Part shown: positions 1,597 through 56,933 of the stretch, piece after piece
Position numbering within the stretch: position 1 is the stretch's first letter
How the letters are laid out: each line of letters starts with the position of its first letter
IMG/VR virus record: IMGVR_UViG_3300028920_000022
Location: 394,730 to 458,729 of that record
Strand: one strand, 5' to 3'
Length of the DNA: 64,000 nucleotides
Program-made: the position numbers and the translations under genes
The notes under the pieces: model-generated
Seen by the model: only the letters and a program-made list of their open reading frames with translations
Databases searched by the model: none
What the model was told of the DNA's origin: nothing

Positions 1597-1682
1597 TGCG
1601 GGAATGTAGCAAAGGCGGCTAGCCAGTCTCATAAGCTGGCGTCCATTGATCGCGAAGGGTTCGATTCCCTCTCCCGCAACCA
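1597..1682 (+). tRNA. tRNA-Met(CAT) with enlarged variable region and encoded CCA
   Basis: TGCGGGA/TCCCGCA acceptor, CCAGT-CTCATAA-GCTGG anticodon arm, GGTTCGATTCC T-arm, ACCA end. Confidence 0.85.
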
Positions 1683-1739: not shown

Positions 1740-3146
1740 ATGGGAAAATTGAAGGTGTGGAAAGTTGGCGCAGCTGGAGAACCCAGTTTTCCTGCCAATT
1801 TTGAGGTGGCTAAAAAAGCCGTTCTCCAAGTTACAGATATTAAAACAAATCGTAATAAGTATTATGCCATAGAACTACACTCTGCTGGCAATAAATATAG
1901 AGTGTTTACTCATTATGGTCGAACAGATGATCTGGACACGAATCCTAATGCTGGGGTGCGCGAGGTTCGTTACGGCAACTTGTCTGAATGTGAAGCAACC
2001 TATCATCAGATATATAGTCAAAAAACTAGCGCAAGAAAAGGATATAAGGAACTTAGCTTAGCATCTTCGCGTATTGGTTCGTCTCAATCGGTTGGTAAAT
2101 CTAGCGGACATGTTGATGACAAAACGCTTGAAAAACTAAACAACGGTAACAAGAAAGTGATAAAAAACAAAGTTTCTACACTTTCTCCCGTTGTACAAGA
2201 TTTTGTTTCTTATATTTATGCTGAAGCCACTAATGCCCTAACTAGCACAATTAATGCCAGCATTACCGCTAATGGTATCGAAACGCCTCTTGGTGTTTTG
2301 ACACTGGGTCAGATTGATAAGGGGCAAAAGATTTTGGATGAGCTTTATGATTTATTCAATTCAAAAAAGAGCCAATCAATACGTGACCATATGGTAGAAC
2401 TGAGTGGTGAGTTTTATACAGTAATTCCTCACAGAATAGGCAGAACTAGGGCTGCTGTAGAAGCTGCTGTTATTGATAGTTTAGTAGATTTTAATGCTAA
2501 GCAAGACACATTACAACTTATGCGAGACATGTTAAGTGTTTCGGGTAAAGACTCCCAGGTACTTATTAACCCTGAAATTGATAAGAAATATAATGCTTTG
2601 GGTTGCGAAATTAAAACTGTAGATAATAAAAAGTATCAAGAATTGAAGGATTATGTAGAGAAATCACAAATAAAAACCAGAAATATTAAAGTAAAGAATA
2701 TATATTCATTATGCAGACCAGAAGAACAAAAGGTTTTTGCTGATAATATTTCAAATAAACGATTACTTTTTCACGGTTCTAGGGCAAAAAACTGGGTAGG
2801 TATTCTTTCCCGTGGTTTGTTGCTTCCTAAGATTGTGGTTAGCTTGGGTGTAAACCGAACTGACGCAGGTTGGCTTGGAAATGGTATTTATTTCGGAGAT
2901 GCTGTTTGCACTACATTATACTACACGTCTCCTGGAAGGCAGAGAAACACCCGGATGATGGCGATAGCGAATGTAGCATTAGGAAAGATGAAGGATTTTA
3001 ATAGAATTACGTATGGATTAAAAGGACCACCCGCTGGATATCATAGTTGTCATGGTGTACGTGGAACCTCATTTGCAGATGATGAATATGTAATTTATGA
3101 CCAGAAACAGCAGAAACTTGAGTATTTAGTGGAGTATGTGTCATGA
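1740..3146 (+). CDS. Poly(ADP-ribose) polymerase-family protein (WGR + regulatory + catalytic domains)
   Basis: WGR-like NKYY.IELH...HYGR; helical regulatory domain (FYTVIPH); catalytic LLFHGS, GNGIYF, DEYVIYD (H-Y-E). Confidence 0.9.
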   Translation: MGKLKVWKVGAAGEPSFPANFEVAKKAVLQVTDIKTNRNKYYAIELHSAGNKYRVFTHYGRTDDLDTNPNAGVREVRYGNLSECEATYHQIYSQKTSARKGYKELSLASSRIGSSQSVGKSSGHVDDKTLEKLNNGNKKVIKNKVSTLSPVVQDFVSYIYAEATNALTSTINASITANGIETPLGVLTLGQIDKGQKILDELYDLFNSKKSQSIRDHMVELSGEFYTVIPHRIGRTRAAVEAAVIDSLVDFNAKQDTLQLMRDMLSVSGKDSQVLINPEIDKKYNALGCEIKTVDNKKYQELKDYVEKSQIKTRNIKVKNIYSLCRPEEQKVFADNISNKRLLFHGSRAKNWVGILSRGLLLPKIVVSLGVNRTDAGWLGNGIYFGDAVCTTLYYTSPGRQRNTRMMAIANVALGKMKDFNRITYGLKGPPAGYHSCHGVRGTSFADDEYVIYDQKQQKLEYLVEYVS

Positions 3147-3373
3147 GAACATCAGAACGTTTTAAAAATGCCCTTGTTGATTTTCCGGATATAGACGGTA
3201 TTCCCATCACATTTACACGTGACGAGCTGCGCATAATGCTGATGTTATGCCAGTCTGTAGAACAATTGTGTAACGAGGCGGAATCGTACATAGACATTGG
3301 GTTTGATACGGACAATGAATCGGTTCGTTTACGGGAAGCTGTGCGTATTGTTCGAGAAACATTGTATGAATAA
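3143..3373 (+). CDS. Hypothetical protein
   Basis: ATGA overlap with the PARP stop. Confidence 0.6.
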   Translation: MRTSERFKNALVDFPDIDGIPITFTRDELRIMLMLCQSVEQLCNEAESYIDIGFDTDNESVRLREAVRIVRETLYE

Positions 3374-3397
3374 TTGATTCAAAGGGGAAGAGCTGCT

Positions 3398-3670
3398 ATG
3401 ATTAAGTTCACACAATATTTGCGACCGAACGGAATTAAACAAGCGGTAGAAATCAAAAGACCCAAAGCTGTTGAAGAAATGGCGGATAAGATTATAGAAG
3501 CCGGAGGAGAGTTTGAGGTAGAGGTTTTAAGCACCGGTACAATTTCGTTGGAGGTGGTGCGGGAAAAAGATGGAGATATGGAAACGTTGTCTGCAGAAAT
3601 TTGTGACAATGGTCCTGCTGTTTTGATTGCCGTAGACAAACTGGTAAAAGCGGCTTTTGATGCTTGTTAA
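3398..3670 (+). CDS. Hypothetical phage protein
   Basis: GGGG SD-like site before ATG 3398; operon context. Confidence 0.6.
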   Translation: MIKFTQYLRPNGIKQAVEIKRPKAVEEMADKIIEAGGEFEVEVLSTGTISLEVVREKDGDMETLSAEICDNGPAVLIAVDKLVKAAFDAC

Positions 3671-3682
3671 GTTAGACGGGTT

Positions 3683-4309
3683 GTGGAGGAGTACATCATG
3701 AGTGCTGATTTTTCAAAATGCTGGTTCAATACTTGGGAAATAGAAGGATACATTAAATCACGCCCATGGCGTGATTGTTGGGGAAACCACCAACCAAACT
3801 TCAATTGTTTCTTTAGAAATAGTTGTGGCAAATTATTTCCAATGAACGATGCTGTTAAAGATGTCATGTCGTCCCACGCTCGTGAAATATTGAGCAGGCA
3901 TCCACAGGTTCAGTTGTCAGAGTTTTTGGCAAGATTAGAAGATTCAAACAATTACATCTCTTTGCGGGATGGAATACTAGAATGGAAACGTCAATGTTTT
4001 GAGGAATATAAAAAATCTTTGGAACAAGAAGAATGTTACATCAAACATGCCCTGAAATATGGATATGATAAAGTTTTAGAATTGCCCATAGAAGATCAGG
4101 AATCGATAGATTTTACAGAAGGATCTGTGTTGTTGGAAGATGGCAAATTCTCTACCACCTTTCGCGATCATAATGGTGATATTTTTATCATAAGTGGCGA
4201 CACTGAGTTACCTCTTTCGATTAAAGAAGAATTTTTGAGCACCTATAATGGGCTAGGATCTGCCCAATATTCAGAAAACAGCGAGAAGCCCGAAGATGAT
4301 CAAAGATGA
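3683..4309 (+). CDS. Hypothetical protein
   Basis: Long ORF; GGAGGAG SD before ATG 3698. Confidence 0.65.
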   Translation: MEEYIMSADFSKCWFNTWEIEGYIKSRPWRDCWGNHQPNFNCFFRNSCGKLFPMNDAVKDVMSSHAREILSRHPQVQLSEFLARLEDSNNYISLRDGILEWKRQCFEEYKKSLEQEECYIKHALKYGYDKVLELPIEDQESIDFTEGSVLLEDGKFSTTFRDHNGDIFIISGDTELPLSIKEEFLSTYNGLGSAQYSENSEKPEDDQR

Positions 4310-6134: not shown

Positions 6135-7277
6135 ATGATTAAATCTATGTTTGATGATGATCTTTACAAGTTCACAATGCAACAGATTATTTTGCATTTC
6201 TATGGAGACAAGAAAGCCGAATATAGATTTAAAAATCGTGGGAACACCAAGTTTAATGACAAGTTTGCTGATAGACTTCAGGATGAGATAGAGAACCTTT
6301 CTCTGTTGGTTCCCGACAAATATGAACTAGAAGAGTTTGCGAAGATTCCGTTTATTAGAGGAGATTATGTAGAGTACTTATCAAGGTATCGTTATGATCC
6401 ACGGCAGGTACAGTTTTCTTTGCGAGATGGAGATTTAGATCTTCGTATAAAGGGTCCATGGCATTCCGCTATATTGTGGGAAGTCAAACTGATGGCGCTA
6501 ATTAGTGAGATTTATTTTGCCCAACATAAAGCTACCTGGACAATGGATGGTCAAAAAGAAAAGCTTGATCGAAAAGCTCTTCTTTTAGAGGCGGTAGATG
6601 CTAAGTATGCCGATTTTGGTACTCGTCGCAGGCGTAGTTTTGAGGTTCAAGATTTGGTGGTAAGAAACCTTGTCAACAAACATGGGTTCCTGGGTACATC
6701 AAATGTACATTTAGCCATTAAACATGGTGTTTCCGCCGTGGGCACTATGGCTCACGAATGGGTTCAGGGTGTATCGGTAGCTGAGGATTTATTGCATGCT
6801 AATGGTATTATGATGGACAGATGGAATTCTTTTTATCAGGGACAGTTGGGTGTTGCTTTAACTGATACATTTACCACTCCGCACTTTTTATACAACAGTT
6901 TTGATGCCAAGCGCGCTGCTGCATTTTCTGGAGTTAGACAAGATTCGGGCGATCCGTTTTGGTTTGCGAATCAGGTGATAAATCGATACCTACAACTAGG
7001 AATTAACCCCAAAACCAAAACCATTATTTTTAGCGATAGTTTAGATGCCAAAACTGCCGCCAAACTACAGATCCATTGTGATGGAAAGATTAACTGTGCT
7101 TTTGGCATTGGCACCAATCTAACTAATGATTTTGACAATTTGAAACCAATTAATATGGTGATCAAGTTGTGGTCAATTGACGGAATTCCGGTAGTAAAGT
7201 TGTCAGATAATGCTGGCAAAAACAATGGCGATCTATGGATGCTTGGGGTTGCGAAGAGGGTGTTTGGGGTATCATGA
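6135..7277 (+). CDS. pncB: Nicotinate phosphoribosyltransferase
   Basis: DDDLYKFTMQQ, ADFGTRRR, GTSNV, GTMAHEW, ALTDTF, GVRQDSGDP, IIFSDSL, FGIGTNLT, VKLSD..GK motifs. Confidence 0.95.
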   Translation: MIKSMFDDDLYKFTMQQIILHFYGDKKAEYRFKNRGNTKFNDKFADRLQDEIENLSLLVPDKYELEEFAKIPFIRGDYVEYLSRYRYDPRQVQFSLRDGDLDLRIKGPWHSAILWEVKLMALISEIYFAQHKATWTMDGQKEKLDRKALLLEAVDAKYADFGTRRRRSFEVQDLVVRNLVNKHGFLGTSNVHLAIKHGVSAVGTMAHEWVQGVSVAEDLLHANGIMMDRWNSFYQGQLGVALTDTFTTPHFLYNSFDAKRAAAFSGVRQDSGDPFWFANQVINRYLQLGINPKTKTIIFSDSLDAKTAAKLQIHCDGKINCAFGIGTNLTNDFDNLKPINMVIKLWSIDGIPVVKLSDNAGKNNGDLWMLGVAKRVFGVS

Positions 7278-8304: not shown

Positions 8305-9321
8305 ATGTCAAAGCGAAATCTGGTTAAGTCTCGTGTTCGTGGAGCTATTTTGGGAACCGCAATTGGAGACGCCCTAGGTGCTCCATTTGAAATGATGGAA
8401 AAAGAACAAATACATAACCTATTGCCGGTTCCGTGGACATGGGGACAACAGCAGAAGGGTATAGTGTTTTCCGAAAACTTTGCTCATCCAAATCTAGGAA
8501 TCGGTCAATGGACCGATGATACTCAATTAATGCGCACTATTTTGTGGTCGATTATTGACGATCATGCCATTGATCCATATGGTATTGCTAAATATACCAG
8601 TGAGGTTTTTGAGAAAGAACAGCTTCGAGGATGGAGCAAATCCGTAATTTCTGCAGCAAAACGACTTTCTCGTGGGGTTCCGTGGTACGATTCTGCCAAC
8701 GAATCCATCGGTATTGGCAACGGTATCGCCATGAAAGCTGCTCCTTTGGGTATTTACCTGGCTAAATACCTGAAAAACGATTACAACTATTCTACCCATG
8801 AGTTTGGCGCCAACCTTAGACATGCCATTGTGTCTATTGTTGGTGTAGGACAAATTACCCACCATGAGCTGGGAATCATGGGTGGCGTAATGCAAAGTGT
8901 CTTAGTTGGTCTTTCGTTCAATAATGTCAAGAACAAGAAGTTGATTCTTAAGGTTCTGGGCAATATTGAAAAGGAATTTTCTGGTGCCACACGGTTTACA
9001 GATAAGCTAAGAATTGCGCTAAAATACAATAGTATTGCGGATGTGGCTGATAATATTGGAACAGACAGCAAGGCAGACAAATCCTGGGTAACTGCAGCTG
9101 CTGTTTTTCTCAACACCAAGAGGCGCAGTGATGCTGCAAAACGCATGATGGAGCTAATCTGCCAGGGCGGCGATTGTGATACTACCGGAGCAATGTTCGG
9201 AGCCTTAGCTGGAGCCCGTTGGGGAATTTCTGCTTTTCCCACGAATCTCAGGAAAGAAGTCGAGGCAAGCAAGGAACTGTTAAAGTTAGCAGATGGTTTG
9301 TATGGAGTGGTTTCTACTTGA
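8305..9321 (+). CDS. ADP-ribosylglycohydrolase (DraG/ARH family)
   Basis: GAILGTAIGDALG, GQWTDDT, GNGIAM, GGDCDTTGAMFGALAGA motifs. Confidence 0.93.
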   Translation: MSKRNLVKSRVRGAILGTAIGDALGAPFEMMEKEQIHNLLPVPWTWGQQQKGIVFSENFAHPNLGIGQWTDDTQLMRTILWSIIDDHAIDPYGIAKYTSEVFEKEQLRGWSKSVISAAKRLSRGVPWYDSANESIGIGNGIAMKAAPLGIYLAKYLKNDYNYSTHEFGANLRHAIVSIVGVGQITHHELGIMGGVMQSVLVGLSFNNVKNKKLILKVLGNIEKEFSGATRFTDKLRIALKYNSIADVADNIGTDSKADKSWVTAAAVFLNTKRRSDAAKRMMELICQGGDCDTTGAMFGALAGARWGISAFPTNLRKEVEASKELLKLADGLYGVVST

Positions 9322-17072: not shown

Positions 17073-17286
17073 AAACATGGCGCAATGCAAACTGTGTGGT
17101 GATATAATAGAATCTACACATGTGTACGATTTTAAGTTTTGCAAATGTGGCGCTATTTTTGTAGATGGTGGTAAAGAATATTTGCGTCGAGGTGGTAAAG
17201 ATTTGAACTTAATTATAGAATTGAGCGTTAAAGAAGGTGAAAACAATATCATAACCGTAGGAGAACACAAATGTCTGATTCAGTAG
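17056..17286 (+). CDS. Small phage zinc-binding protein
   Basis: CKLCGDIIES.HVYDFKFCKCGAIFVDGG.EYLRR. Confidence 0.65.
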   Translation: MTKILKNMAQCKLCGDIIESTHVYDFKFCKCGAIFVDGGKEYLRRGGKDLNLIIELSVKEGENNIITVGEHKCLIQ

Positions 17287-17943
17287 TAATAGAAATTAGA
17301 GCTGCCGAAGGTGGCAAAGATGCACAACTTCTAGTAGAAGATCAGCTTAGGGCTTATACCAAAGCTGCGGAGCGGGAGTGTCTTTGACGCTACTCTGTTA
17401 GAACATAGACAGGCATTTGTTTCTGTATTATTTGAGGGAAAAGGGGCAAATAATTTATTCAAAAATGAGGCGGGAGGACATCGGTTTCAACGAGTCTCTC
17501 CCACCGAAAAACGAGGGCGTGTCCATACCTCTACCATTACCGTAGCAGTATTGGACGCCGATACCAAGCCTCAGTTCGAGCTTGACGAACGTGATGTAGA
17601 AATCATTACATCACGTGGCAGCGGACCGGGCGGTCAACACAGAAATATGACAGATAGCTGTGTTGTAGCTAAACACATACCAACTGGTATATCTGCTAAG
17701 ATCGATTATAGATCTCAGTCACAAAGTAAACAGCTGGCGCTCAAAATTCTTGCCTCTCGTGTGGAGAATATACAGCAAGAACAATGGGCAAATGACCGAG
17801 ATAAAAAGAGGAAACGACAGGTGGGTCGTGGACAACGTGGAGATAAGCGGAGAACGTATCGGGAACGGGACGATCAAATTGTTGATCATGTAACCGGCAA
17901 GAAATGGAAGTTTAGTCGTTGGATGCGAGGGATTTGGTCCTAA
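17271..17943 (+). CDS. Short class-I peptide chain release factor (223 aa, lacks domain 1) made by +1 programmed frameshift
   Basis: AGGAG SD + ATG 17271; frame 0 IEIRAAEGG..A (38 codons) to CTT TGA C; +1 frame gives EAGGHRFQRVSPTEKRGRVHTS, GPGGQHRN, RTY motifs. Confidence 0.9.
17374..17388 (+). promoter_or_regulatory. RF2-type +1 frameshift cassette
   Basis: GGGAG-TGT-CTT-TGA-C matches the prfB pattern (internal SD, 3 nt, CUU UGA C). Confidence 0.88.
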
Positions 17944-18638
17944 ACCCCAGGTTGTCTAAGAAAGTTTAGCTTTCCTTCGTGGGAAACAATTTTTGCCAAA
18001 TCTTTGTCCTGCAATATGTTGGATAAATCAACCATTTCCCATGTGCCACTATCATGAAGCCTTAAAGTACATTTGGGATTGACTAACCTTAATACCTGAC
18101 TGGCGTCCCGGTGTACATCGTTATGTGCAAAACCGGGAGATTGCCAACATTTTAACCCACGGGTAACGGCATTGTATCTGGCTGTGGGATGAACCCAGCC
18201 ATAGTTACAAGCTGTGTGGATGCCGTATTTTCCTTGCCCCAAACGGTTGCTGAGAACCCAGCTTTTTCCAATAGTAGAAATTAGTTTTCCGGCACTATCT
18301 TTATCTAATTTTTTATCAATAGCAGCGCTGTAATCTTCAGAAGACGCTAATGCGGTTATTTTTCCGTTTATTTGGGTTATTGGAGAAATACTAACCTCAG
18401 CATCAATAGAAATTAGATCCTCTATTTTTGGAGTGGTCATCATTAAACCAAGAGCATCAGCTAATTCTTGGGTTTCAATTGCTGTAACCATAAATCTGAT
18501 CCCATCGATTTTGGCGGCATCAGAAAATACCTCAAAACATAACTCATCTCCATCTTCACCTACAGCCGTGATTGACGAAAATGTGTATTTTATCTTGCCG
18601 TTATCCAGAGCGTTTTTGATATAGTCTCTCATTTTCAA
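17940..18638 (-). CDS. Hypothetical protein in the cell-wall enzyme cluster
   Basis: Long ORF convergent with the RF gene. Confidence 0.65.
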   Translation of the reverse strand: MKMRDYIKNALDNGKIKYTFSSITAVGEDGDELCFEVFSDAAKIDGIRFMVTAIETQELADALGLMMTTPKIEDLISIDAEVSISPITQINGKITALASSEDYSAAIDKKLDKDSAGKLISTIGKSWVLSNRLGQGKYGIHTACNYGWVHPTARYNAVTRGLKCWQSPGFAHNDVHRDASQVLRLVNPKCTLRLHDSGTWEMVDLSNILQDKDLAKIVSHEGKLNFLRQPGV

Positions 18639-19363
18639 TACCCCAATCTGTGCATGGAATCTACGATTTCTTCGATTTCTTTCATATCGATTCCAGCTGT
18701 ATCTATTTTACCACGCTTTAAGTGGTAATGGTTAACCAATCCTGTGTATTTTTCTGGTTCACTTAACACTGTAGTTATATAATTACCGTTTTTATCTCTA
18801 GGAAATTTTGAAGGTATTTTGGGGAACAGTTCTGTATATCCCCAAATCAAAGCCTTCAGCGAATTCATTTGAGCTTTTGTAGGCAAAAATACCTTCAGTT
18901 TGGTGCCATGTATTGGGGCTGTTACTGTATCATGGTCTGGTACATCATATTTTTTGCGATTAGTTTTCGAGTATAAATTTGGGTGTGACCATTTCTGTGG
19001 CATGTAGGAAATTTCTACACCAGCACCTAAAGCATTAAATTTTCCACCTTGACTCCACCCACCGTGTTGTATGGGCAAACACTGGTAAATTGTAGCATAT
19101 CCGCTTTCATCTTTATCGTCATCGATCATGAAGTTGCAGGACAACCCTCGGGCAATTAGTCCGCTTTCCATATGTTTGGCACGATACGTTACAGACCAAT
19201 GGACAGTAAACTGGGTCAATATATTAGATAGTTGATCAAAGCTTATGTCTCTTTTTGTATAACGATTATGTGGAAGGAAATTTATTCCTTCTTTTTCATC
19301 CCACAGGATTACACGGCAGCCAATATTGAAAGTTTTGTCGCAGGCAACTATACTAGTGTTCAT
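18635..19363 (-). CDS. N-acetylmuramoyl-L-alanine amidase (Amidase_2-like endolysin)
   Basis: FTVHWS, LSCNFMID, N..GAGVEI, T.AQM.SL..LI, LVNHYH...KID. Confidence 0.8.
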   Translation of the reverse strand: MNTSIVACDKTFNIGCRVILWDEKEGINFLPHNRYTKRDISFDQLSNILTQFTVHWSVTYRAKHMESGLIARGLSCNFMIDDDKDESGYATIYQCLPIQHGGWSQGGKFNALGAGVEISYMPQKWSHPNLYSKTNRKKYDVPDHDTVTAPIHGTKLKVFLPTKAQMNSLKALIWGYTELFPKIPSKFPRDKNGNYITTVLSEPEKYTGLVNHYHLKRGKIDTAGIDMKEIEEIVDSMHRLGY

Positions 19364-19695
19364 TGCGCTTTCCTCATCACTATGGACTTAAATTCTGGCG
19401 GACCACCAATCACAACAACATCTTCAGCATTATACTGGCATGGAACTTTTTCAAACCATAAGTTATCAAAAACTGTATCTGTACTTGGGCTTCCTATAAT
19501 ATATGAGTTGAATACACGTATCGTTATTGGGTTAATTTGTGAGTAAGGAAACGCAAAGTTAGCCTTAAAGACATGTTTAAGTCTGCATATATCAAAACGA
19601 ATAATATCGCTAAAGAACAGATTATTGTCTCTCCACAGATTTCTGGCGGTACCGACAATCACCCCTTCACATTCAATTAGAATGTTTGTTGACAT
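19360..19695 (-). CDS. Hypothetical protein, possible shortened tail-tube-like paralog
   Basis: STNILI..EG..VG, IRFD, SQINPITI, TVFDNLWF pattern recalled from myovirus tube proteins. Confidence 0.45.
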   Translation of the reverse strand: MSTNILIECEGVIVGTARNLWRDNNLFFSDIIRFDICRLKHVFKANFAFPYSQINPITIRVFNSYIIGSPSTDTVFDNLWFEKVPCQYNAEDVVVIGGPPEFKSIVMRKAQ

Positions 19696-19961
19696 TATTG
19701 TATTATGTTTTTTATAACGTATTCGTCACAAGAATACAAATCACCAACACAAGAATATAAATCACCAACATATATAATGTTATTTTCTGTTTTTAAACTG
19801 CACGCGAAAAACCCACACTTTTTACATTGATATTGTATAGCAACCTCAAACACATTATTATCTATAACCTCAAAATCATGTGTGCTTAATTTTTCATTAT
19901 TTATGGGATAATGATTCCACCGTCTTTTTATGATTTCGGAAATATTAATTTTGTGCATCAC
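19695..19961 (-). CDS. Small Cys protein, IKDIIE family
   Basis: YQCKKC; duplicated GDLYSC; ends VIKNIIQ. Confidence 0.6.
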   Translation of the reverse strand: MMHKINISEIIKRRWNHYPINNEKLSTHDFEVIDNNVFEVAIQYQCKKCGFFACSLKTENNIIYVGDLYSCVGDLYSCDEYVIKNIIQ

Positions 19962-20782
19962 CAGCAGCCTTCAAATAGCGTAGATAACCAAGCCAAAATT
20001 CCACCAAAGAGTAGAATAACTGCTGCTGTGGATCCTTTATGTGATTTTGGGTCATCGTAGTAGTCTGATTCTTCGTCATTTTCCACCGTGCGGTCTGCGT
20101 TTACAAAGTATTCGTATATTGAATTTAACTGTAGTTCGGCTGCTTGTACTCTAACTTCCTTCAACTCTTCTTCAGTAAAGGTTTCTTCTGATTCTATTTC
20201 TACTGGCTTTGTTGGCTTCCAGGATAATAGTTTTTTGGCTTTTTTGTTAAATTCATTAGTTAGTCTTACTACACCCTTTGTGTATAGAGACACCGAAGCA
20301 GTGTAATATCCGGCCAGGCTTAGCTCTTTTGAATATGCTTCTGGATTCCCCTTTATTACTTCTTGCCACGCTTTAGCGTAACGGCTTTTTTTAGATACAA
20401 AACGTATGTAATCTTCTGCTCCGTCAGTTGAGGTTTTGTACGCCCTAAAATGGGTTTGAATGTGGGGCGGATCAAACATTACCTGCTTTTTATTTATAAT
20501 TTCTCCACACCTGAACATTGTAAATAATTGTCCGTCATCAGTAATTTTATATTTAGGATTTGCATGACGCTTTTTTATATTACCAAAATTATAATTTCTA
20601 ATTATTGACCATCTTCCTGTTTCCAATGCACTCTGAGCCCACAACAAAGCAAGGGATTTATTACTAGGATAAGACTTATATATACGTTTCCAGGCATTTC
20701 TGAGAGCAACAGCTGCCTCTCCTTCGCTGAGTTCTGTAATCTGTAACGGAATGTATTGTTTATCTTTGTAATAATTAACCAT
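19958..20782 (-). CDS. GH73/FlgJ-like glucosaminidase with C-terminal TM helix
   Basis: AQSALETG, NYNFGNIK, FRAY, GYYTAS..Y; hydrophobic C-terminus. Confidence 0.75.
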   Translation of the reverse strand: MVNYYKDKQYIPLQITELSEGEAAVALRNAWKRIYKSYPSNKSLALLWAQSALETGRWSIIRNYNFGNIKKRHANPKYKITDDGQLFTMFRCGEIINKKQVMFDPPHIQTHFRAYKTSTDGAEDYIRFVSKKSRYAKAWQEVIKGNPEAYSKELSLAGYYTASVSLYTKGVVRLTNEFNKKAKKLLSWKPTKPVEIESEETFTEEELKEVRVQAAELQLNSIYEYFVNADRTVENDEESDYYDDPKSHKGSTAAVILLFGGILAWLSTLFEGCW

Positions 20783-32857: not shown

Positions 32858-34081
32858 CAAAAAAGAAGTCCTCTACTTTTAAGTGGAGGATGAATTTTTT
32901 CTTCCGTATCTACGCATAATTATTCATATTTTTGAAGATATGTTGGTTTACAAATACAGACTCTATCCCAGTAAAAAGCAGCAAGAAAAACTGTGGATAC
33001 ATGCGAATAAATTGAATTGGATCTATAACCAGTTTCTAGATCAGAAAATTAACACATATAAGAATACAAAAAAGAATCTCTCCAGATACGATCTACAAGC
33101 GCAATTACCGAAACTTAAACAACGAGATCCAGTAATTAAAGAAATACATTCGCAAGTTTTGCAACAGGTGCCCAAGCGTTTAAACCAAGCATTTAAAGAT
33201 TTTTACAAAAGAGGAAACAAAGGATTTCCAAACTTCAGATCTAGTTTGAACTTCTTCGGTATTTGTTATCCTCAGAGCGGATACTCTATATCAGGAAATG
33301 TCTTTAGAACGAAAATATACGGTAAAATGTCGTTTCTCAAATATCGCCCTATTCGTGGGAATATTCGACAAGTGTATATTACTAGTGAGAAAAATGGCTG
33401 GTTCATTTGTATAACAACTGACTATGAAAAAGATATTCCGAAAGCAACGGATAAGATCGGTATTGATGTAGGATTAAAGGATTTGGTTGTAACATCCGAA
33501 GGAAAACATATTAAAAACTGTAGTCATGCGAAATATTTTGACAAACAGATAGCGAAGATATCGTCAAGAATAGATAAGAAAAAGAATAAGAAATCCAGAT
33601 CTCGAAAGTTTCTGTGTAAAGTTCGGCGCAGATTGTATGATGTGAAAAAACGTAAGATTAACGATTTTCAACATAAAGTCTCGAAGAGACTTAGTTCCGA
33701 ATGCGATACAATATTTGCTGAGAATTTGAGTGTAAAGAAGATGAGTGAAGGAGAATTGCGGAACTTAAACAAGAGCATTCGAAATGCCAAATTAGCTAAT
33801 TTCATTTCGTATCTATCATACAAGACCAACACATTGGTGTTGGTCAATCCGAAGAACACAAGCAAGACATGTAATCATTGTGGGAATATTCGAGAGAATT
33901 TGAAGTTATCCGAGAGGACGATTACATGTGACAAATGTGGTGAAGTATATGATAGGGACGAAAATGCCGCTAAGAACGTTTATTGCCTGGGACAGGCTAT
34001 TCAGGATCTACAGTTAGAACCTGAGTATGCTGAATTATTTACGATTCAGGAAGCTCTTGCCTTAAGGCAAGAGTAGTTCAC
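32858..34081 (+). mobile_element. IS200/IS605-family (IS1341-like, tnpB-only) element, 1224 bp
   Basis: LE CAAAAAAG + hairpin TCCTCTAC-TTTTAA-GTGGAGGA; RE hairpin CTCTTGCCT-TA-AGGCAAGAG then TAGTTCAC; removing it restores the flanking reading frame. Confidence 0.85.
32940..34076 (+). CDS. tnpB: TnpB RNA-guided endonuclease
   Basis: YKYRLYP HTH; RuvC IGIDVG / AENL / DRDENAAKN (D-E-D intact); CxxC..CxxC ribbon. Confidence 0.95.
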   Translation: MLVYKYRLYPSKKQQEKLWIHANKLNWIYNQFLDQKINTYKNTKKNLSRYDLQAQLPKLKQRDPVIKEIHSQVLQQVPKRLNQAFKDFYKRGNKGFPNFRSSLNFFGICYPQSGYSISGNVFRTKIYGKMSFLKYRPIRGNIRQVYITSEKNGWFICITTDYEKDIPKATDKIGIDVGLKDLVVTSEGKHIKNCSHAKYFDKQIAKISSRIDKKKNKKSRSRKFLCKVRRRLYDVKKRKINDFQHKVSKRLSSECDTIFAENLSVKKMSEGELRNLNKSIRNAKLANFISYLSYKTNTLVLVNPKNTSKTCNHCGNIRENLKLSERTITCDKCGEVYDRDENAAKNVYCLGQAIQDLQLEPEYAELFTIQEALALRQE

Positions 34082-34433: not shown

Positions 34434-35483
34434 TTATACCTCAAACAACGGACATGTTCTACAAGAAAACGAATTGCTTTCCCTGGTTTTTAATAAACTA
34501 TTACGGAATGCAACCATTCTTTCGTGGTTCCACACATCTTCAATAAATGAATTGCAGGAGACTACGTCCATTCCCCGCGCCCACTCTACACAACCCTCGG
34601 CAAAAGAGCAAGGAAAAGCTTCACCCTTCCAGTTGATAAATATGGAAAACAATGAACTCTCGCAAGGCTCCACATACTCAGCTATCTTGTCAAAATCTTT
34701 ATGGTTTTTAATTGTGTTCAAGAATTTGAAAGCGGAACAACTATCGAAACCAAGCCCAACATTATTTGAAGTAGCTTGGTAAACCAAGTAAGCAAACTTG
34801 TTTTGTGACAGTTTGTGATAATGTTTCCCTCGCCCCTTTTGCTTTAAAGATAGCATAACAATAGCTTTTACAGGATCCAAACGAGAATCTTTTACCTTGT
34901 CTCTAATGGTTTCCCGAGTAAGATTAAATGTTTCCTCACTGATCATACAATGAATGTTAATTTGTTGCAACCCATGTTTGTGCAATTTTTGAATAGAATC
35001 GTAGCAAATATTTTTATTTTCGTAACGGCTGACAGCAACAGCCCCACAAACTTCTGCTAGTTTTGCTGCAGTTTCGTCTGAAATATCGGCAACGGTGATG
35101 TTTGGTATAACCCCATTGTTTCGACAATACCACATCATATCGAAAAGTTCGGGGTTTGATGTGGCATTACTATCCGCACCAAAAGCAATTTGCGTTAGTA
35201 TTCGGTTTTCTGTAATTTTGTCGAAAACTTTTTTAAAGGTATCCAGGGACATGTTGTTGCCAACCGGAGTATTAGATTTGTAGCAATGTTTACAAACCTT
35301 TCCACCTACACCTTTACATATGGTGGTTACTTCGATGTCAGCAATCTCGGGAGACGGCGACATCTCCGGGTCTTCTTTTTTAGAGCTGCCCCAACGAATA
35401 AAATATCCAGAACCTTTATGGAACCGGTAATTATAATTAGGAGAGCGAACTGTTTTATGGTGTTTGCTTTCAGTAATTTTCAT
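34434..35483 (-). CDS. Radical SAM enzyme with SPASM/twitch-like C-terminus
   Basis: CKGVGGKVCKHCY (CX7CX2C), PCESSLFS.FINWKGEAFPCSF, CRTC. Confidence 0.85.
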   Translation of the reverse strand: MKITESKHHKTVRSPNYNYRFHKGSGYFIRWGSSKKEDPEMSPSPEIADIEVTTICKGVGGKVCKHCYKSNTPVGNNMSLDTFKKVFDKITENRILTQIAFGADSNATSNPELFDMMWYCRNNGVIPNITVADISDETAAKLAEVCGAVAVSRYENKNICYDSIQKLHKHGLQQINIHCMISEETFNLTRETIRDKVKDSRLDPVKAIVMLSLKQKGRGKHYHKLSQNKFAYLVYQATSNNVGLGFDSCSAFKFLNTIKNHKDFDKIAEYVEPCESSLFSIFINWKGEAFPCSFAEGCVEWARGMDVVSCNSFIEDVWNHERMVAFRNSLLKTRESNSFSCRTCPLFEV

Positions 35484-38400
35484 CCATTGCGTACCCTTCG
35501 GAGATATTGCGCCAAGTTTTCATTAGGTTTCGGCGCGTAATCTCCAAGGTACTCTAGCTTTTCTTCCATGTCAACACCAATAATTTTTCCAAAATTTTCC
35601 AGCTCTTTCTTTGCGTTTCCCCACAAAGCATTCTTATTTTTGAGGAACCAAACCAGCGCTATTTCTTCAATATTTTTACCATTAAATCTGGCATCCGGAT
35701 TCAGAATATAGGTAGAAAAGAATATTTCCATAGCCTCAGCAAATTCGTTTTCTCGTTCTTGGTAAGCTATATTGCGTGCCATTCCTTTTGGAATATTGGC
35801 AACCATTTCTTTATATTCTTCTGGCAATTGGTATACATTTTTTGCAATCAGTCGTAAAGCGGTTCCTATAGGCATCCATTTTGTTTTATCTTGTTCGAAA
35901 AGTCCGCTCATTTCTGCTGGGTTAATTTGTCCTATTTCTTTTCCTTGCAGCTGAATTCCCTTAATATTTTTGATATTAATTGGTCTGTGAACAACGCCCT
36001 GATTTTCTCCCAAATCGTTCATTTCGCCTTTTTCGTTATGTCTGGTGTCGTCTGGGTCAATCTCTATCCAATTGAGCGGAATTGCCATTTCCAGTACCAC
36101 TGGATCTCCGCCATCTTCTTTCGCGGTGTGATTAGCATAGAGCCAGGCGCCTGTAAAGCCTTCCAGCTGACGGGTGACGTAGATACCTGGGCTTACTGAT
36201 TCCCAATTAACGTAATTTTCGGCAATAGAGGGGTCCAGGGAGCCATGTTGAACAATAAGTGCCAATTTCTTAGACGAGGTACCGTGGTAAACAATTACCT
36301 TGTGTTTTCCAGCAGCCTCTCTAAATTCGGGATCGTGTAAACTTCGGACTCTACCCAGCTCTAGTGGCAAAGCCCTCTTAGAAAAAGCCAGGGACTGTTT
36401 CAATAAATTATGTCGTATAAATGCCTTTATTGTTGTATCAGTTTCTTTTTTCAACATTTCTTTAAGGTTATTATTATCAAGCTTTGTGGCAATTTTAATT
36501 CTTTCTTTTTTGTCTTTTTTAGATATTAATTTAACCAAAGGGTCTTTGGTGTCATTGGTATCTTCCTCGTCTTCATCTTCTCCGCAGCCACATTCTTCAC
36601 AATGTTCAGTTTCGCATGGGCAATCTTCACAATGACATCCACAGTTTAGACAATCATCGAAGCCACATCCACAATTTGGACATTCTTCAGTTTCGCAAGT
36701 GCAGTCTTCACAATGGCAGCCACAATTTTCACAGTTATCATAGCCACATCCACAATCTGGACACTGTTCTGTTTCGCAAGTACAATCTGGACAATGACAT
36801 CCACAGTTAGGACATGGGTCTAATCCACAACCACACTCTTCACATTGCTCTTCATCGCAATTACAATCCTCACAATGACATCCACAATTTTCACAGTTAT
36901 CAAACCCACATCCACAATTTGGACATTCTTCAGTCTCGCAAGTGCAGTCTTCACAGTCACACTCGCAATGTGGACAAATGGCTTCAGGTTTTATTCTCAT
37001 ACGAACGGCTCTAAACTTAGCATAAAGCTTGGCATATTCATTGCCTACCATCTTGTCTTTTATGATATTTAATACTGAATATTGAGCTTTATGGTTTAGA
37101 ATTTCATTACCCAGCATTTTACGTAGATATTGGTAATCAATTCTTTTTGCAACAGCTCCGCGAACATCTACTGAAGGATCATCCATGAGTAATGTTAAAT
37201 ATTTTTTATCTACTCTTTGGGCCACAGCATAACGCACCAGTTGGGTATCCCATATGGGGCTATCAATGAGAAGGTGTAAACTTTTCTCTGGCAAGCGTTG
37301 AGCCAGCTTTCCTAAAGCATCCAAGTTTTTAATATTTTTTGTCAAGATTTGTGGGAGATATTTTTCCAGCAGCTCGGGTTTTGTTTTCATAAACAACTGC
37401 CCCATTGCCATATATTCAATTGGTCCCAAGTCTTGCCTATTCAATAATTCTTCAAATACATTAGAAGTATCTTTCATTTTATGTAATGCAGCAGACACTG
37501 TGTCTAAATTATCACTTTTGACCATTGCTTCCAAATCTGATTCGTCAGCAACCTGTTGAACAAAAAGCTGTTGCACTCTAAAATTATTGTCATGCATCAT
37601 AAAAGACTTAAGTACTTTATGATATTTTTTAGCTATATTTTTGTCGTAAACCAGTTTACTATATGCTGATAAACGTACATTTTCATCTTCCGATCTCACA
37701 AAATGGAAAGCTTCAAGTATTGGTAGGCGATTAATGGCTGCTTGTTGTGCGTTTGGTGTTGTGTTTTTTAATAAATCTATATGATCTTGCAGATCCTGGT
37801 AGTTCATTGACGTAGCTGCATAATATTGATTTGACGGATCGTCAGAAGACAGATGTTCAACTCGCCTCATACGCTCTCGTAACACCTCTAATACTCGTGG
37901 GTTTTTTTCCGTCTTCATCATTAAAGATATTTGGTTGTAAGGTATTCGTTGTGCTACGGAATCTCGTACAGTTTCGGACTGGTCTTTCACCATTAATATC
38001 AAACGATCTCTGGGTATTTTTTGTGCTACTATGTTGCGAACACCAACGCTGGGATCTTTCATCATTTCAGGTAGATATTTTTCATCTATAGTGTTAGCTA
38101 TTTGAACTCGTATAGGCTCAAATTCATCATGAATAAATTTAGGCAAATATTTTTTATCCACTTGTTTGATGGCAGCGTATCTTGCGTTATCATTAGTGCT
38201 TTCAAGTAGTCTTACCCAAGGAATTTTACTATATATAACCTGTGTTACAGCAAGATCTATATCTCCATTTTTGCGATCAAGAATTTTGTTTAAATACTCT
38301 TCAGAATATTCCTCATAACGATGGTTATCTATATAAGCAACAACCACATCATCATCCGGGTCGTTTTTTAATGTTGTTAGTTTTTCTTTCAACTCTTGTG

Positions 38401-40663
38401 TTTGAGCAGGAACGTTTTGTGCTATCCACATGCGGATTTTAGTGATTGGACTTGTGGATAGCTTTACTAATATATCTACGGTTTCTTCATTGTATCCATA
38501 TACATTCGTAAGAGTTTTTAGGGCGTATATCCTGGTATCAACATTCATGTTTTCATCAGTGGATATTTGGTGTAGCTCTTCTTCTGAAGCATGAGAGAGA
38601 GCCTCTCCTTTAATATACAGATAACCTTCTGACAAACTATCATCGTGTAGTATTAATTTTAGAATTTCTGAATCTATATCGCTACGCAACGCAATTGCTG
38701 CTTTTATTTTATCGGTACCATTTAGATACATTTCTTTAAGGTACTTTGCGTCTATTCTTTTTGCTACAATTCTTCGAACATCTTCATCTGGATGATCTTT
38801 GAAAGGAACCACCTTATCTTCTGGAACATATACCAAAGCCGTTAAAACCACAGAAACGCTTGGGTCATTAAGCAGTTTTACACATATTTCTGGAGGAGCC
38901 ACACTTGCCAACTCTGCCCTTACACTTGGGTTTGGATCATTCAACATTCCTGCTAGAACTGCCACATCCCCGTTAGCAGCCAAAACTTTTACAGCTTCCT
39001 TGCGCACACGAGTGCTTTTCATAAATTTAGCTAATTGGTGAGGATATTTTCTTACAACATCACTTAAAAACACTTCAGATGAATAATTTTCTTCGTTAAT
39101 ATTTGTTTTATTATAAAGAGCCTCCATGTACGCTAGTATAGTGTTTTCATTGGCGTTTGCGTTCAAAAACTCTCTGAAGGGTATCAGGTTATAGGTGCGT
39201 GCAGCCGTCCACACTTCTTCCGGTACTGATTGTGATATTATTTTTTTACTTTGTTCTAATAGCGTATTTCTATATGATTCATTTATATGTGGATTTTGGG
39301 CGGCAGCGATAACTACTGGATAATCTCTAATGTGTCGTTTTAAAACCCTATAAAACAAATCCCCATCATATCGCTTGATAAGTTCGGCAAGAACAGATAT
39401 ACTGGAATCATTATACATGGTTTCGATAATGTCCATATCAGCTCGCTGTGCCACCTCTAGGCGTACTTTTTCCGATGGATCATCTACCAACAACCCCAGA
39501 TCTCTGGATAAAAGACGTTTTGCTATAAATAACCGTTCAGCTGGAGTGGCTTCTTCTGTAATTAAATGAATTAAATGTTCTTTTTTAGTTTTTTTATATT
39601 TACCTAAGTCTATAGGTCCAGTGGATTCTGTTAATAATTCTTTTAATTCATTTTCAACTTTATATACGGGTTTTTTTGTTTTAGGATTAATTCCTTCCCA
39701 TTTTGGTTTTTCTCTATAAGGGTTTTTGATAATATCGATCACATCTATGGCATTTGTTCCAAAGTAGGCGCCCTGATAAGGTTCGTTGGTATGTATTGTT
39801 CCGGTTCCTGGATCATGTACCCCAGAATAGCCCAAACTGGTAAGAATACGTCTAAACAAAAACTTATTCTCAATATTCAATCCCAGCTTTCCAACCGAAT
39901 TATGAACAAACCTTACAATATAAAATAATTGTGACGCAACCGTGGCTACATTTCTAGAACCTTCGCTTTTATTATACAACTTGTCAACAATTTTATTTAT
40001 TTGGTTGGGGACCTTAGAGGTATCATCTCCCAGATATTTTTGTTTTAATTGATGTAATTCGTTTTGAAGTTTGTATTCTGATTGATTAGCTTTTACTAAC
40101 TCCAAAGACGCTTGGGACATACCTTCTTTATCGTCTTTTTCTTCAAAACTTCTGTAACGTTCAGCAAAACCAGCCTTCTCTTCTTGTATTTTTTGTAATC
40201 TAATTTCTGCTTCTTCTATTTCTTTCTTTCGTTTTTGTTGAGTGCCTAAAACATAAGGCACAAGTATGTTTTTTATTTTTTCTACATCTCTTTCTAGATC
40301 GCCCTCGTTATACTTGCCAACGTCTAAAACAGTTTCGGGATTTCTGGCTTTAAATATAATAACACCAGGGCTATCAGCTTTAAAACGAATAATTTTTCTA
40401 GTACCATTAATAAAGTCTTCAACGGTTTTTTCTATAATAGGAAAACCATAAATTCCTACAGGAGTATCATAATGAGATTGTAGATATAATCCCCAAATGA
40501 GTTTTTTATCTTGATTTCGGTTTGCCCAAGGATTTACGGTTTCAGAAAAATGCAAATAATGATAGGGTTTAACATAATTCTTGATAATTCCCACCGCAGG
40601 AGGAATGTGGATATCCTCTTTTATATGCCTACGTTTCGCTTGTTTATAACTCATTTGTCCCAT
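35480..40663 (-). CDS. 1727-aa mosaic protein: ART-like N domain, HEAT/LRV repeats, Cys-rich repeats, ART-like C domain
   Basis: YLHF..PVGIYG..GYSG..D.G.G.IH..EP.Q; many D....VR..VA.R repeats; CxCxxC array; VYHGTS...GIYVT...VVLE. Confidence 0.8.
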   Translation of the reverse strand: MGQMSYKQAKRRHIKEDIHIPPAVGIIKNYVKPYHYLHFSETVNPWANRNQDKKLIWGLYLQSHYDTPVGIYGFPIIEKTVEDFINGTRKIIRFKADSPGVIIFKARNPETVLDVGKYNEGDLERDVEKIKNILVPYVLGTQQKRKKEIEEAEIRLQKIQEEKAGFAERYRSFEEKDDKEGMSQASLELVKANQSEYKLQNELHQLKQKYLGDDTSKVPNQINKIVDKLYNKSEGSRNVATVASQLFYIVRFVHNSVGKLGLNIENKFLFRRILTSLGYSGVHDPGTGTIHTNEPYQGAYFGTNAIDVIDIIKNPYREKPKWEGINPKTKKPVYKVENELKELLTESTGPIDLGKYKKTKKEHLIHLITEEATPAERLFIAKRLLSRDLGLLVDDPSEKVRLEVAQRADMDIIETMYNDSSISVLAELIKRYDGDLFYRVLKRHIRDYPVVIAAAQNPHINESYRNTLLEQSKKIISQSVPEEVWTAARTYNLIPFREFLNANANENTILAYMEALYNKTNINEENYSSEVFLSDVVRKYPHQLAKFMKSTRVRKEAVKVLAANGDVAVLAGMLNDPNPSVRAELASVAPPEICVKLLNDPSVSVVLTALVYVPEDKVVPFKDHPDEDVRRIVAKRIDAKYLKEMYLNGTDKIKAAIALRSDIDSEILKLILHDDSLSEGYLYIKGEALSHASEEELHQISTDENMNVDTRIYALKTLTNVYGYNEETVDILVKLSTSPITKIRMWIAQNVPAQTQELKEKLTTLKNDPDDDVVVAYIDNHRYEEYSEEYLNKILDRKNGDIDLAVTQVIYSKIPWVRLLESTNDNARYAAIKQVDKKYLPKFIHDEFEPIRVQIANTIDEKYLPEMMKDPSVGVRNIVAQKIPRDRLILMVKDQSETVRDSVAQRIPYNQISLMMKTEKNPRVLEVLRERMRRVEHLSSDDPSNQYYAATSMNYQDLQDHIDLLKNTTPNAQQAAINRLPILEAFHFVRSEDENVRLSAYSKLVYDKNIAKKYHKVLKSFMMHDNNFRVQQLFVQQVADESDLEAMVKSDNLDTVSAALHKMKDTSNVFEELLNRQDLGPIEYMAMGQLFMKTKPELLEKYLPQILTKNIKNLDALGKLAQRLPEKSLHLLIDSPIWDTQLVRYAVAQRVDKKYLTLLMDDPSVDVRGAVAKRIDYQYLRKMLGNEILNHKAQYSVLNIIKDKMVGNEYAKLYAKFRAVRMRIKPEAICPHCECDCEDCTCETEECPNCGCGFDNCENCGCHCEDCNCDEEQCEECGCGLDPCPNCGCHCPDCTCETEQCPDCGCGYDNCENCGCHCEDCTCETEECPNCGCGFDDCLNCGCHCEDCPCETEHCEECGCGEDEDEEDTNDTKDPLVKLISKKDKKERIKIATKLDNNNLKEMLKKETDTTIKAFIRHNLLKQSLAFSKRALPLELGRVRSLHDPEFREAAGKHKVIVYHGTSSKKLALIVQHGSLDPSIAENYVNWESVSPGIYVTRQLEGFTGAWLYANHTAKEDGGDPVVLEMAIPLNWIEIDPDDTRHNEKGEMNDLGENQGVVHRPINIKNIKGIQLQGKEIGQINPAEMSGLFEQDKTKWMPIGTALRLIAKNVYQLPEEYKEMVANIPKGMARNIAYQERENEFAEAMEIFFSTYILNPDARFNGKNIEEIALVWFLKNKNALWGNAKKELENFGKIIGVDMEEKLEYLGDYAPKPNENLAQYLRRVRNG
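36585..36980 (-). repeat. About five ~81-bp Cys-rich units inside the giant ORF
   Basis: CHCEDCTCETEECPNCGCGFDNCENCG-type unit repeated with variation. Confidence 0.8.
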
Positions 40664-56860: not shown

Positions 56861-56933
56861 CGGGTCCTGCGAGATTTGAACTCGCGTCTAAAAGCTTTAA
56901 AGGCTTTCGCTCTCGCCGCTGAGCTAAGGACCC
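56861..56933 (-). tRNA. Ochre suppressor tRNA (anticodon TTA), Lys-like body
   Basis: GGGTCCT/AGGACCC acceptor, GCTC/GAGC D-stem, AAAGC-CTTTAAA-GCTTT anticodon arm, GCGAG-TTCAAAT-CTCGC T-arm, G73. Confidence 0.92.

Follow-up and report, generated by a model that had tools for sequence, protein, structure and literature searches.

A shortened RF1-like release factor with a putative +1 frameshift signal in a huge phage and in related phage and bacterial loci

Introduction

The textbook case of a gene that measures its own product through recoding is prfB, which encodes release factor 2 (RF2), and this frameshift has until now been confined to RF2. In E. coli a short first open reading frame ends at codon 25/26 in CUU-UGA-C, preceded at a spacing of 3 bases by an internal Shine-Dalgarno-like (SD) run (AGGGGG-TAT-CTT-TGA-C), and the remainder of the gene lies in the +1 frame. 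With CUU in the P site and a poorly decoded stop codon in the A site, tRNA-Leu re-pairs with UUU, SD:anti-SD pairing three bases upstream favors the forward slip, and the probability of slipping rises as release at that stop slows (PMC5009743, PMC3711429, PMC10274946). The consensus of the prfB site is YTT_TRA_C, with UGA as the stop used (PMC3711429), and no downstream RNA structure is needed.

RF1 (prfA) is not known to require recoding (PMC5009743), and a reviewer comment in the paper on PrfH notes that RF2 has the frameshift mechanism whereas RF1 does not (PMC1586002). [quoted passage not shown] PrfH (RFH), the RtcB-linked release factor homologue that rescues damaged ribosomes, lacks domain 1, is about 200 aa, retains GGQ and is an accessory gene of patchy distribution, but carries a conserved SxY tripeptide and has no frameshift (PMC1586002). 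RF1 or RF2 genes thought to sustain or redirect termination during infection have been reported in huge and stop-codon-recoded phages, without mention of domain loss or a frameshift (Al-Shayeb 2020, PMC7162821; Borges 2021, 10.1101/2021.08.26.457843). In Mimivirus/Megavirus a release factor gene needs frameshifting and readthrough (PMC5009743). That factor belongs to a giant virus of amoebae, is of the eukaryotic/archaeal eRF1 type and is unrelated in sequence to the bacterial RF1/RF2 fold. A survey of release factor evolution mentions neither phages nor frameshifts.

Here we analyze a 64,000-nucleotide stretch (the window; positions 394,730 to 458,729 of IMG/VR record IMGVR_UViG_3300028920_000022) of a 458.7 kb contig from a huge phage, in which a prfB-type signal interrupts an RF1-like gene. 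Full-text literature searches found no description of a frameshifted RF1-like or phage release factor, although these did not cover subscription-only papers and thus prior description cannot be excluded.

Results

A release factor gene split by one base

The original prediction, made from sequence alone, was that the window encodes a phage release factor lacking domain 1 and carrying a relocated RF2-type frameshift cassette within the domain 2 region. What it described in the DNA is correct. Window positions 17370-17388 read GAG CGG GAG TGT CTT TGA C, and the features of the locus are as follows.

17260..17263 (+): GGAG, an SD-like motif 7 bases before the ATG of ORF0.
17271..17387 (+): ORF0, 38 codons plus TGA, encoding the start of RF domain 2 (VVIEIRAAEGGKDA... 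helix alpha-5 region); this would be the product if termination occurs at UGA.
17374..17378 (+): internal SD-like GGGAG, 3 bases upstream of the shift codon (spacer TGT, 17379-17381), the same spacing as in E. coli prfB.
17382..17388 (+): putative shift site, CTT (17382-17384), TGA (17385-17387) and C (17388); by analogy with prfB, tRNA-Leu on CUU would re-pair with UUU, T17385 would be skipped and reading would resume at GAC (Asp).
17386..17943 (+): +1-frame ORF, 185 codons plus TAA (17941-17943), encoding the rest of domain 2, domain 3 with GGQ, and domain 4.
17497..17505 (+): codons for Ser-Pro-Thr, at the position of the RF1 PxT and RF2 SPF "tripeptide anticodon", preceded by the RF1-type Gln of QRV.
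17629..17637 (+): codons for GGQ, the peptidyl-tRNA hydrolysis motif (within GPGGQHRN, 17623-17646).

The zero-frame ORF encodes MSDSVVIEIRAAEGGKDAQLLVEDQLRAYTKAAERECL (MSDSVVIEIRAAEGG...ERECL*), while the +1 frame reads DATLLEHR...QRVSPTEKRGRVHTS...GPGGQ. The two pieces are colinear on release factor profiles. Pfam PCRF matches the first piece at profile positions 100-133 (25.6 bits, E 1.2e-05) and the second at 153-194 (45.3 bits; cut-off 24), followed by the RF-1 domain (79.8 bits against a cut-off of 35, E 2e-22), placing the protein in the bacterial class-I release factor superfamily. The NCBIfam RF1 profile is matched at 105-137 and then at 157-319, and tblastn with an unbroken homologue (P0043) switches frame exactly at its residue 37. 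The two frames are therefore consecutive parts of one gene (223 aa when joined) offset by one base. The combined signal GGRG-N3-CTTTGAC (GGRGNNNCTTTGAC) occurs once in the window, at this junction, against 0.04 expected, and an independent assembly of another sequencing run (Logan, SRR8554435) is base-for-base identical across the site. No downstream stimulatory RNA structure was found (z = -0.94).

Domain 1 is absent. The ATG at 17271 is the first start after a stop, no start or open frame lies further upstream, the protein begins at the first strand of domain 2, and the upstream ORF encodes a DUF7695 zinc-ribbon-like protein rather than RF domain 1. The shift site maps to about position 137 of the RF1 profile and about 149 of the prfB profile, about 110-120 profile positions further in than the prfB site, and the domain that holds the prfB site is missing altogether. 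The position is therefore not homologous to that of prfB, as had been proposed.

Relationship to RF1, RF2 and PrfH

By sequence the protein is closest to RF1, with NCBIfam scores of 158, 98 and 83 bits for RF1, RF2 and PrfH, and solved structures give the same order (PDB sequence scores of 124, 80 and 54 bits). It nevertheless falls below the full-length cut-offs of each: 151.8 bits on TIGR00019 (cut-off 423.25) and 158 bits on NF001859 (cut-off 400), where the matches cover only profile positions 105-137 and 157-326, 98.5 bits on TIGR00020 for RF2 (cut-off 370), and 82.9 bits on TIGR03072 for PrfH (cut-off 166.65). An AlphaFold model of the closest unbroken homologue (P0043, 58% identical, mean pLDDT 81) superposes on ribosome-bound T. 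thermophilus RF1 with a TM-score of 0.89 over the whole chain, compared to 0.80 for RF2 and 0.69 for PrfH, and in this model the shift point falls between helix 15-34 and the next strand. On a maximum-likelihood tree rooted on E. coli RF2 the 134 domain 1-less sequences form one clade (SH-aLRT 98) that excludes E. coli RF1 and two full-length RF1s; the tree is a quick LG+G4 search, thus only its well supported (starred) branches were used. Given the RF1 lineage of the protein, the cassette more likely arose independently than moved from prfB, and the term "relocated" in the original prediction is not supported.

The tripeptide SPT aligns column for column with P-V-T of Thermotoga RF1, so that Thr at position 3 is RF1-like while position 1 is Ser and the strict P-x-T pattern of RF1 is not matched. 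The preceding Gln and the HTS motif are of RF1 type. The original prediction read SPT as a hybrid of RF1 PxT and RF2 SPF, suggestive of broad specificity. However, SPT is a minority state in the family, in which PPT (a plain PxT) dominates, PPN accounts for about a quarter, and PPS, PPG, PET, SPL and others also occur, and tripeptide residue 3 shows no association with the stop codon of the cassette (Fisher p = 1.0). SPT alone is therefore not evidence for broad specificity. In contrast GGQ is kept in 142 of 143 family sequences and the RF1-type Gln in 139 of 141.

A rescue role, raised in the original prediction, would make the product a PrfH-like or ArfB-like factor that frees ribosomes stalled or damaged during infection, for example by host nucleases, with the cassette switching it on when ribosomes stall at stops. 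In its favor, the protein resembles PrfH in lacking domain 1 and in its patchy, horizontally spread distribution, the tripeptide is variable, and PrfH is a detectable relative. However, RF1 scores almost twice as high as PrfH, the predicted fold is closer to RF1, and the stop codon-reading elements of RF1 (the GG-D/E-A helix tip, Gln of QRV, and HTS) are conserved. RtcB is not adjacent, as the neighbors encode DUF7695, a DeoC-like aldolase (both upstream) and cell-wall hydrolases; none of the 34 window ORFs scanned with Pfam or PHROGs hits RtcB, and none is present in relatives' loci with called genes. No conserved partner gene was seen in other phage or bacterial loci, although Myxococcota flanks gave almost no Pfam hits. 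We therefore reject PrfH membership and consider a rescue role unlikely.

Conservation of the putative shift site

Megablast of the region against GenBank phages found nothing, and tblastn found only relatives at 48% identity or less, mostly in unannotated huge-phage and gut-phage records. A protein search found 2347 relatives of 170-222 aa, which are of two kinds: unbroken proteins of about 220 aa beginning MxSxxVEIRGAEGG, and +1-frame calls in which a meaningless leader is followed by GGVFD or GSVFD, the +1 translation of GGNGGNGTCTTTGAC. An IMG/VR scan found 337 relatives, of which the best 80 were retrieved. Of these 80 loci, 66 need a +1 shift at CTT-stop, located 32 codons after the start of the xEIRAAEGG motif in 65 and 42 codons after in one (L082, of an RPGEGG subfamily; L numbers designate retrieved loci). 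Over the 62 non-identical viral loci, whose proteins are only 42-60% identical to that of the window, CTT and the first T of the stop are invariant, the stop is TGA in 51, TAG in 8 and TAA in 3, and C follows the stop in 42. CGGAGG occupies positions -12 to -7 in 31 and other SD-like hexamers in roughly a dozen more, whereas about 10 of the 62 lack an SD-like motif. At the same site the DNA of unbroken homologues reads AAG CTG GAG, CGA CTG ACC or AAC ATA TCC, with neither CTT nor an SD.

These data bear on whether the gene is a pseudogene or the extra T a sequencing or assembly error, in which case the region would make only a 38-aa peptide or an internally initiated C-terminal fragment. Gene callers do split the gene into 38 aa plus a 130-aa ORF starting with TTG, and translation of the joined frames is inferred from sequence alone. 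However, besides the identical independent assembly, the same one-base offset with the same CTT-stop at the same codon occurs in more than 110 independent viral and bacterial loci whose proteins are otherwise under clear purifying selection in both pieces, making this explanation very unlikely. A fragment starting at 17551 would lack the whole codon-reading domain; internal initiation of the +1 ORF was rejected because the product would lack the decoding helix and because unbroken homologues are colinear. Transcriptional slippage was rejected because the run is only TTT.

Distribution

The description as a phage release factor requires correction. A scan of one genome per species found 310 relatives, and among the 80 loci retrieved 40 have CTT-TGA and 11 have CTT-TAG, most of them in Myxococcota MAGs; several Myxococcota cassettes lack an SD-like motif. 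Isolate genomes with the family include the complete chromosomes of Minicystis rosea (CTT TGA C) and Archangium gephyra (CTT TAG C), and the draft genome of Thiobacillus denitrificans DSM 12475. Viral and genomic copies are interleaved on the tree, thus the family is not phage-specific and appears to move between phages and bacteria. About 25 of the 80 viral contigs exceed 200 kb.

Variation of the cassette stop

Across the viral and bacterial cassettes the stop is TGA in about 80%, TAG in about 17% and TAA in about 3% of loci. Starred branches of the tree force at least 10 TGA/TAG switches, including between the sister pairs L013/L022, L135/L144, L137/L145, L097/L099 and L141/L142, the last from one MAG. 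Some relatives carry an in-frame stop instead. Three of these (L081, Rhodovibrio sodomensis L150 and Pararhizobium BT-229 L153) are in one frame but carry GG[AC] TGA AAG at the site, the TGA aligning with the Trp of the RF1 motif GW[KR] seen in E. coli RF1 and in the full-length RF1s L156 and L158. From this alignment Trp is the predicted residue inserted on readthrough. L052 has an in-frame CTA TGA C, and its sister L058 an in-frame TAT TAG A, at the same codon. In the RPGEGG subfamily the site lies about 10 codons later and is either CTT TGA C (L082, L096, L102, L103) or an in-frame TGA (L044, L061, L065, L073, L119, L127). A few phage copies have two in-frame stops and may come from recoded genomes. 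In nearly every member, then, full-length protein requires that a stop codon early in the gene is not used for termination.

Genetic code and context of the window

The window carries a suppressor-type tRNA, tRNA(UUA), which prompted us to ask whether the gene belongs to a phage code change module (suppressor tRNA plus RF, with or without aaRS). Within these 64 kb of the 459 kb genome stop codon reassignment was rejected: the standard code gives 84% ORF coverage, all three stops end genes (TGA 39, TAA 21 and TAG 17 of 77 ORFs), same-frame ORF runs separated by TAA look like separate small genes, and the tRNA lies 39 kb from the release factor gene. SD-like motifs precede 29 of the 77 window ORFs against a 10% background. 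The window also contains a phage helicase and a baseplate-hub homologue.

Discussion

We conclude with good, though not complete, confidence that the locus is one gene for a small class-I release factor of the RF1 lineage that lacks domain 1, and that full-length protein needs a programmed +1 frameshift at CUU-UGA-C after codon 38. Our analysis establishes directly that the two frames encode colinear parts of one RF fold, that the cassette (CTT plus stop, usually with GGAGG three bases upstream) is conserved at the same codon in more than 110 diverged relatives from huge phages and bacteria, that unbroken relatives lack it, and that GGQ and the RF1-type decoding residues are kept. Frameshifting itself and its response to release factor levels are in contrast inferred, by extension of the prfB mechanism. 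In this view a ribosome with peptidyl-tRNA-Leu on CUU and UGA in the A site would either terminate, giving a 38-aa peptide, or slip +1 if release is slow, helped by the internal SD:anti-SD pairing, and so make the full factor. The cassette would couple synthesis of the factor to how badly stop codons are being decoded in the infected cell, acting as a gauge of termination capacity at UGA, the commonest stop in the window. Domain 1 is dispensable for codon-specific release in vitro but needed for RF3 interaction (PMC1586002, citing Mora et al.), thus the factor should release peptides without RF3-dependent recycling.

The interpretation in the original prediction is therefore supported only in part. 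The complete cassette, the restoration of the RF core including GGQ in the +1 frame, the loss of domain 1 and the non-homologous site hold, and the proposal that the product is made when UGA termination is weak follows from the prfB mechanism and is strengthened by the relatives with an in-frame stop, which also make expression depend on failure to terminate. The phage specificity and the weight placed on SPT do not hold, and the rescue role remains conjectural.

Several features fit less well with this model. The cassette stop differs among relatives and switches often, which is not what strict RF2-type autoregulation predicts, and an RF1-like factor should by canonical rules read only UAA/UAG and not the UGA that gates it here, in which case the cassette would report host RF2 activity rather than that of the factor itself. 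Free interchange of the gating stop would be explained more simply if the factor read all stops, or if the stop acted only as a pause. The tripeptide is also unusually variable for a stop codon reader, and about 10 of the 62 viral cassettes and several Myxococcota ones lack an SD-like motif. One alternative is that the frameshift is real but constitutive, the stop serving only as a slow-to-decode A-site codon that makes CUU slippage efficient and sets a fixed ratio of short peptide to full factor, or that the offset simply persists as a tolerated indel, with no sensing of any particular release factor. The drift in stop identity, its lack of association with the tripeptide, proportions that resemble general stop codon usage in GC-rich genomes, and the preference for C after the stop, a weak termination context in E. 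coli, are consistent with this possibility. However, a fixed ratio gives no obvious benefit over an unbroken gene, and unbroken genes exist in the family, yet the invariant CTT-stop is kept across 42-60% identical proteins in phages and bacteria. Relatives that replaced it kept a stop codon at the same site, which points to selection for dependence on termination, and any stop-dependent shift is mechanistically sensitive to RF concentration. We thus consider constitutive shifting unlikely.

A more speculative possibility, which we regard as unlikely but cannot rule out, is that this is a third, previously unrecognized kind of bacterial-type class-I release factor, an RF3-independent "mini-RF" spread between huge phages and bacteria (notably Myxococcota) that reads all three stop codons, or at least the one in its own cassette. 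It would be truly autoregulated by stop codon recoding, through a +1 shift at CUU-UGA/UAG/UAA in most members and in-frame stop readthrough in others, which would explain why the gating stop can change freely. In the phage it would act as a self-limiting reserve of termination capacity, drawn on when host RF1/RF2 are saturated, inhibited or out-competed by the phage's own suppressor tRNA.

Relative to prfB, then, the same type of signal is found at another site in an RF1-like factor that has shed domain 1, and two features bear on points listed as unknown in the recoding field: the gating stop can be UGA, UAG or UAA, and some members carry the long-hypothesized but never observed in-frame stop in a release factor gene. 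The family offers a natural series for testing how stop identity, context and SD spacing set frameshift sensing, a compact RF with naturally varying tripeptides whose codon specificity is open to direct assay, and evidence that huge phages regulate, rather than merely carry, translation termination capacity. It also matters for annotation, as gene callers split these genes into a 33-38-aa ORF and a truncated "RF1".

Possible alternative gates at the recoding site

Several relatives of the release factor are in a single frame but have an in-frame stop at the codon position of the frameshift site, namely TGA in relatives L081, L150 (Rhodovibrio sodomensis), L153 (Pararhizobium sp. BT-229) and L052, and TAG in relative L058. 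In L081, L150 and L153 the TGA, in the context GG[AC] TGA AAG, aligns with the conserved Trp of the RF1 motif GW[KR], suggesting UGA readthrough by tRNA-Trp as an alternative gate. In a subfamily with the motif 'IEIRPGEGG' the recoding site lies about 10 codons further downstream, and within this one well-supported clade the site alternates between an in-frame TGA (G-TGA-L/I; loci L044, L061, L065, L073, L119 and L127) and CTT TGA C (loci L082, L096, L102 and L103).

The frameshifted domain-1-less family is frequent in Myxococcota genomes and MAGs (loci L083-L155, which include L101 of Minicystis rosea CP016211, L118 of Archangium gephyra NZ_CP102578 and L103 of Thiobacillus denitrificans), and these copies are interleaved with huge-phage copies on the tree. 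However the ORFs flanking the chromosomal copies gave almost no Pfam hits, thus we can neither assign these copies to prophages nor rule out the possibility that they sit in them. A single genome bin, the Polyangiales MAG JBGARZ01, holds two closely related copies of the domain-1-less factor on two contigs (L141 and L142), one gated by CTT-TGA with the tripeptide PPG and the other gated by CTT-TAG with the tripeptide PPS.

Other features of the phage window

The following features of the window accompany the release-factor gene:
1597-1682 (+), an 86-nt tRNA-Met called by ARAGORN
1740-3146, 6135-7277 and 8305-9321 (+), an NAD/ADP-ribose gene set
17940-20782 (-), genes convergent with the release factor
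32883-34076 (+), a TnpB / IS605 OrfB-like gene
56861-56933 (-), a tRNA with anticodon UUA

The tRNA at 56861-56933 is well formed (Rfam 71.5 bits, the best score among the tRNAs of the window) and its anticodon makes it an ochre-suppressor type, yet the window uses the standard code and TAA ends 21 of 77 ORFs. Same-frame ORF runs separated by TAA (for example 3119-4309) look like separate small genes. A functional link between this tRNA and the release factor 39 kb away is possible, but it has not been shown. The tRNA-Met called by ARAGORN at 1597-1682 does not reach the gathering score of the Rfam tRNA model. It may be an unusual or intron-containing tRNA, or a false call.

The genes convergent with the release factor include weak matches to Amidase_2 and Glucosaminidase (cell-wall hydrolases), so that the release-factor gene ends head-to-tail against a possible lysis-related block, and its stop overlaps the end of the 232-aa ORF by 4 bases. 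The NAD/ADP-ribose set comprises a eukaryote-like PARP (WGR, PARP regulatory and catalytic domains), a nicotinate phosphoribosyltransferase and an ADP-ribosylglycohydrolase. Finally, the TnpB / IS605 OrfB-like gene, which matches the OrfB_IS605 and Cas12f1-like TNB domains, lies on the opposite strand to its neighbours and sits next to a 1727-aa ORF (35480-40663) that has no informative family match.
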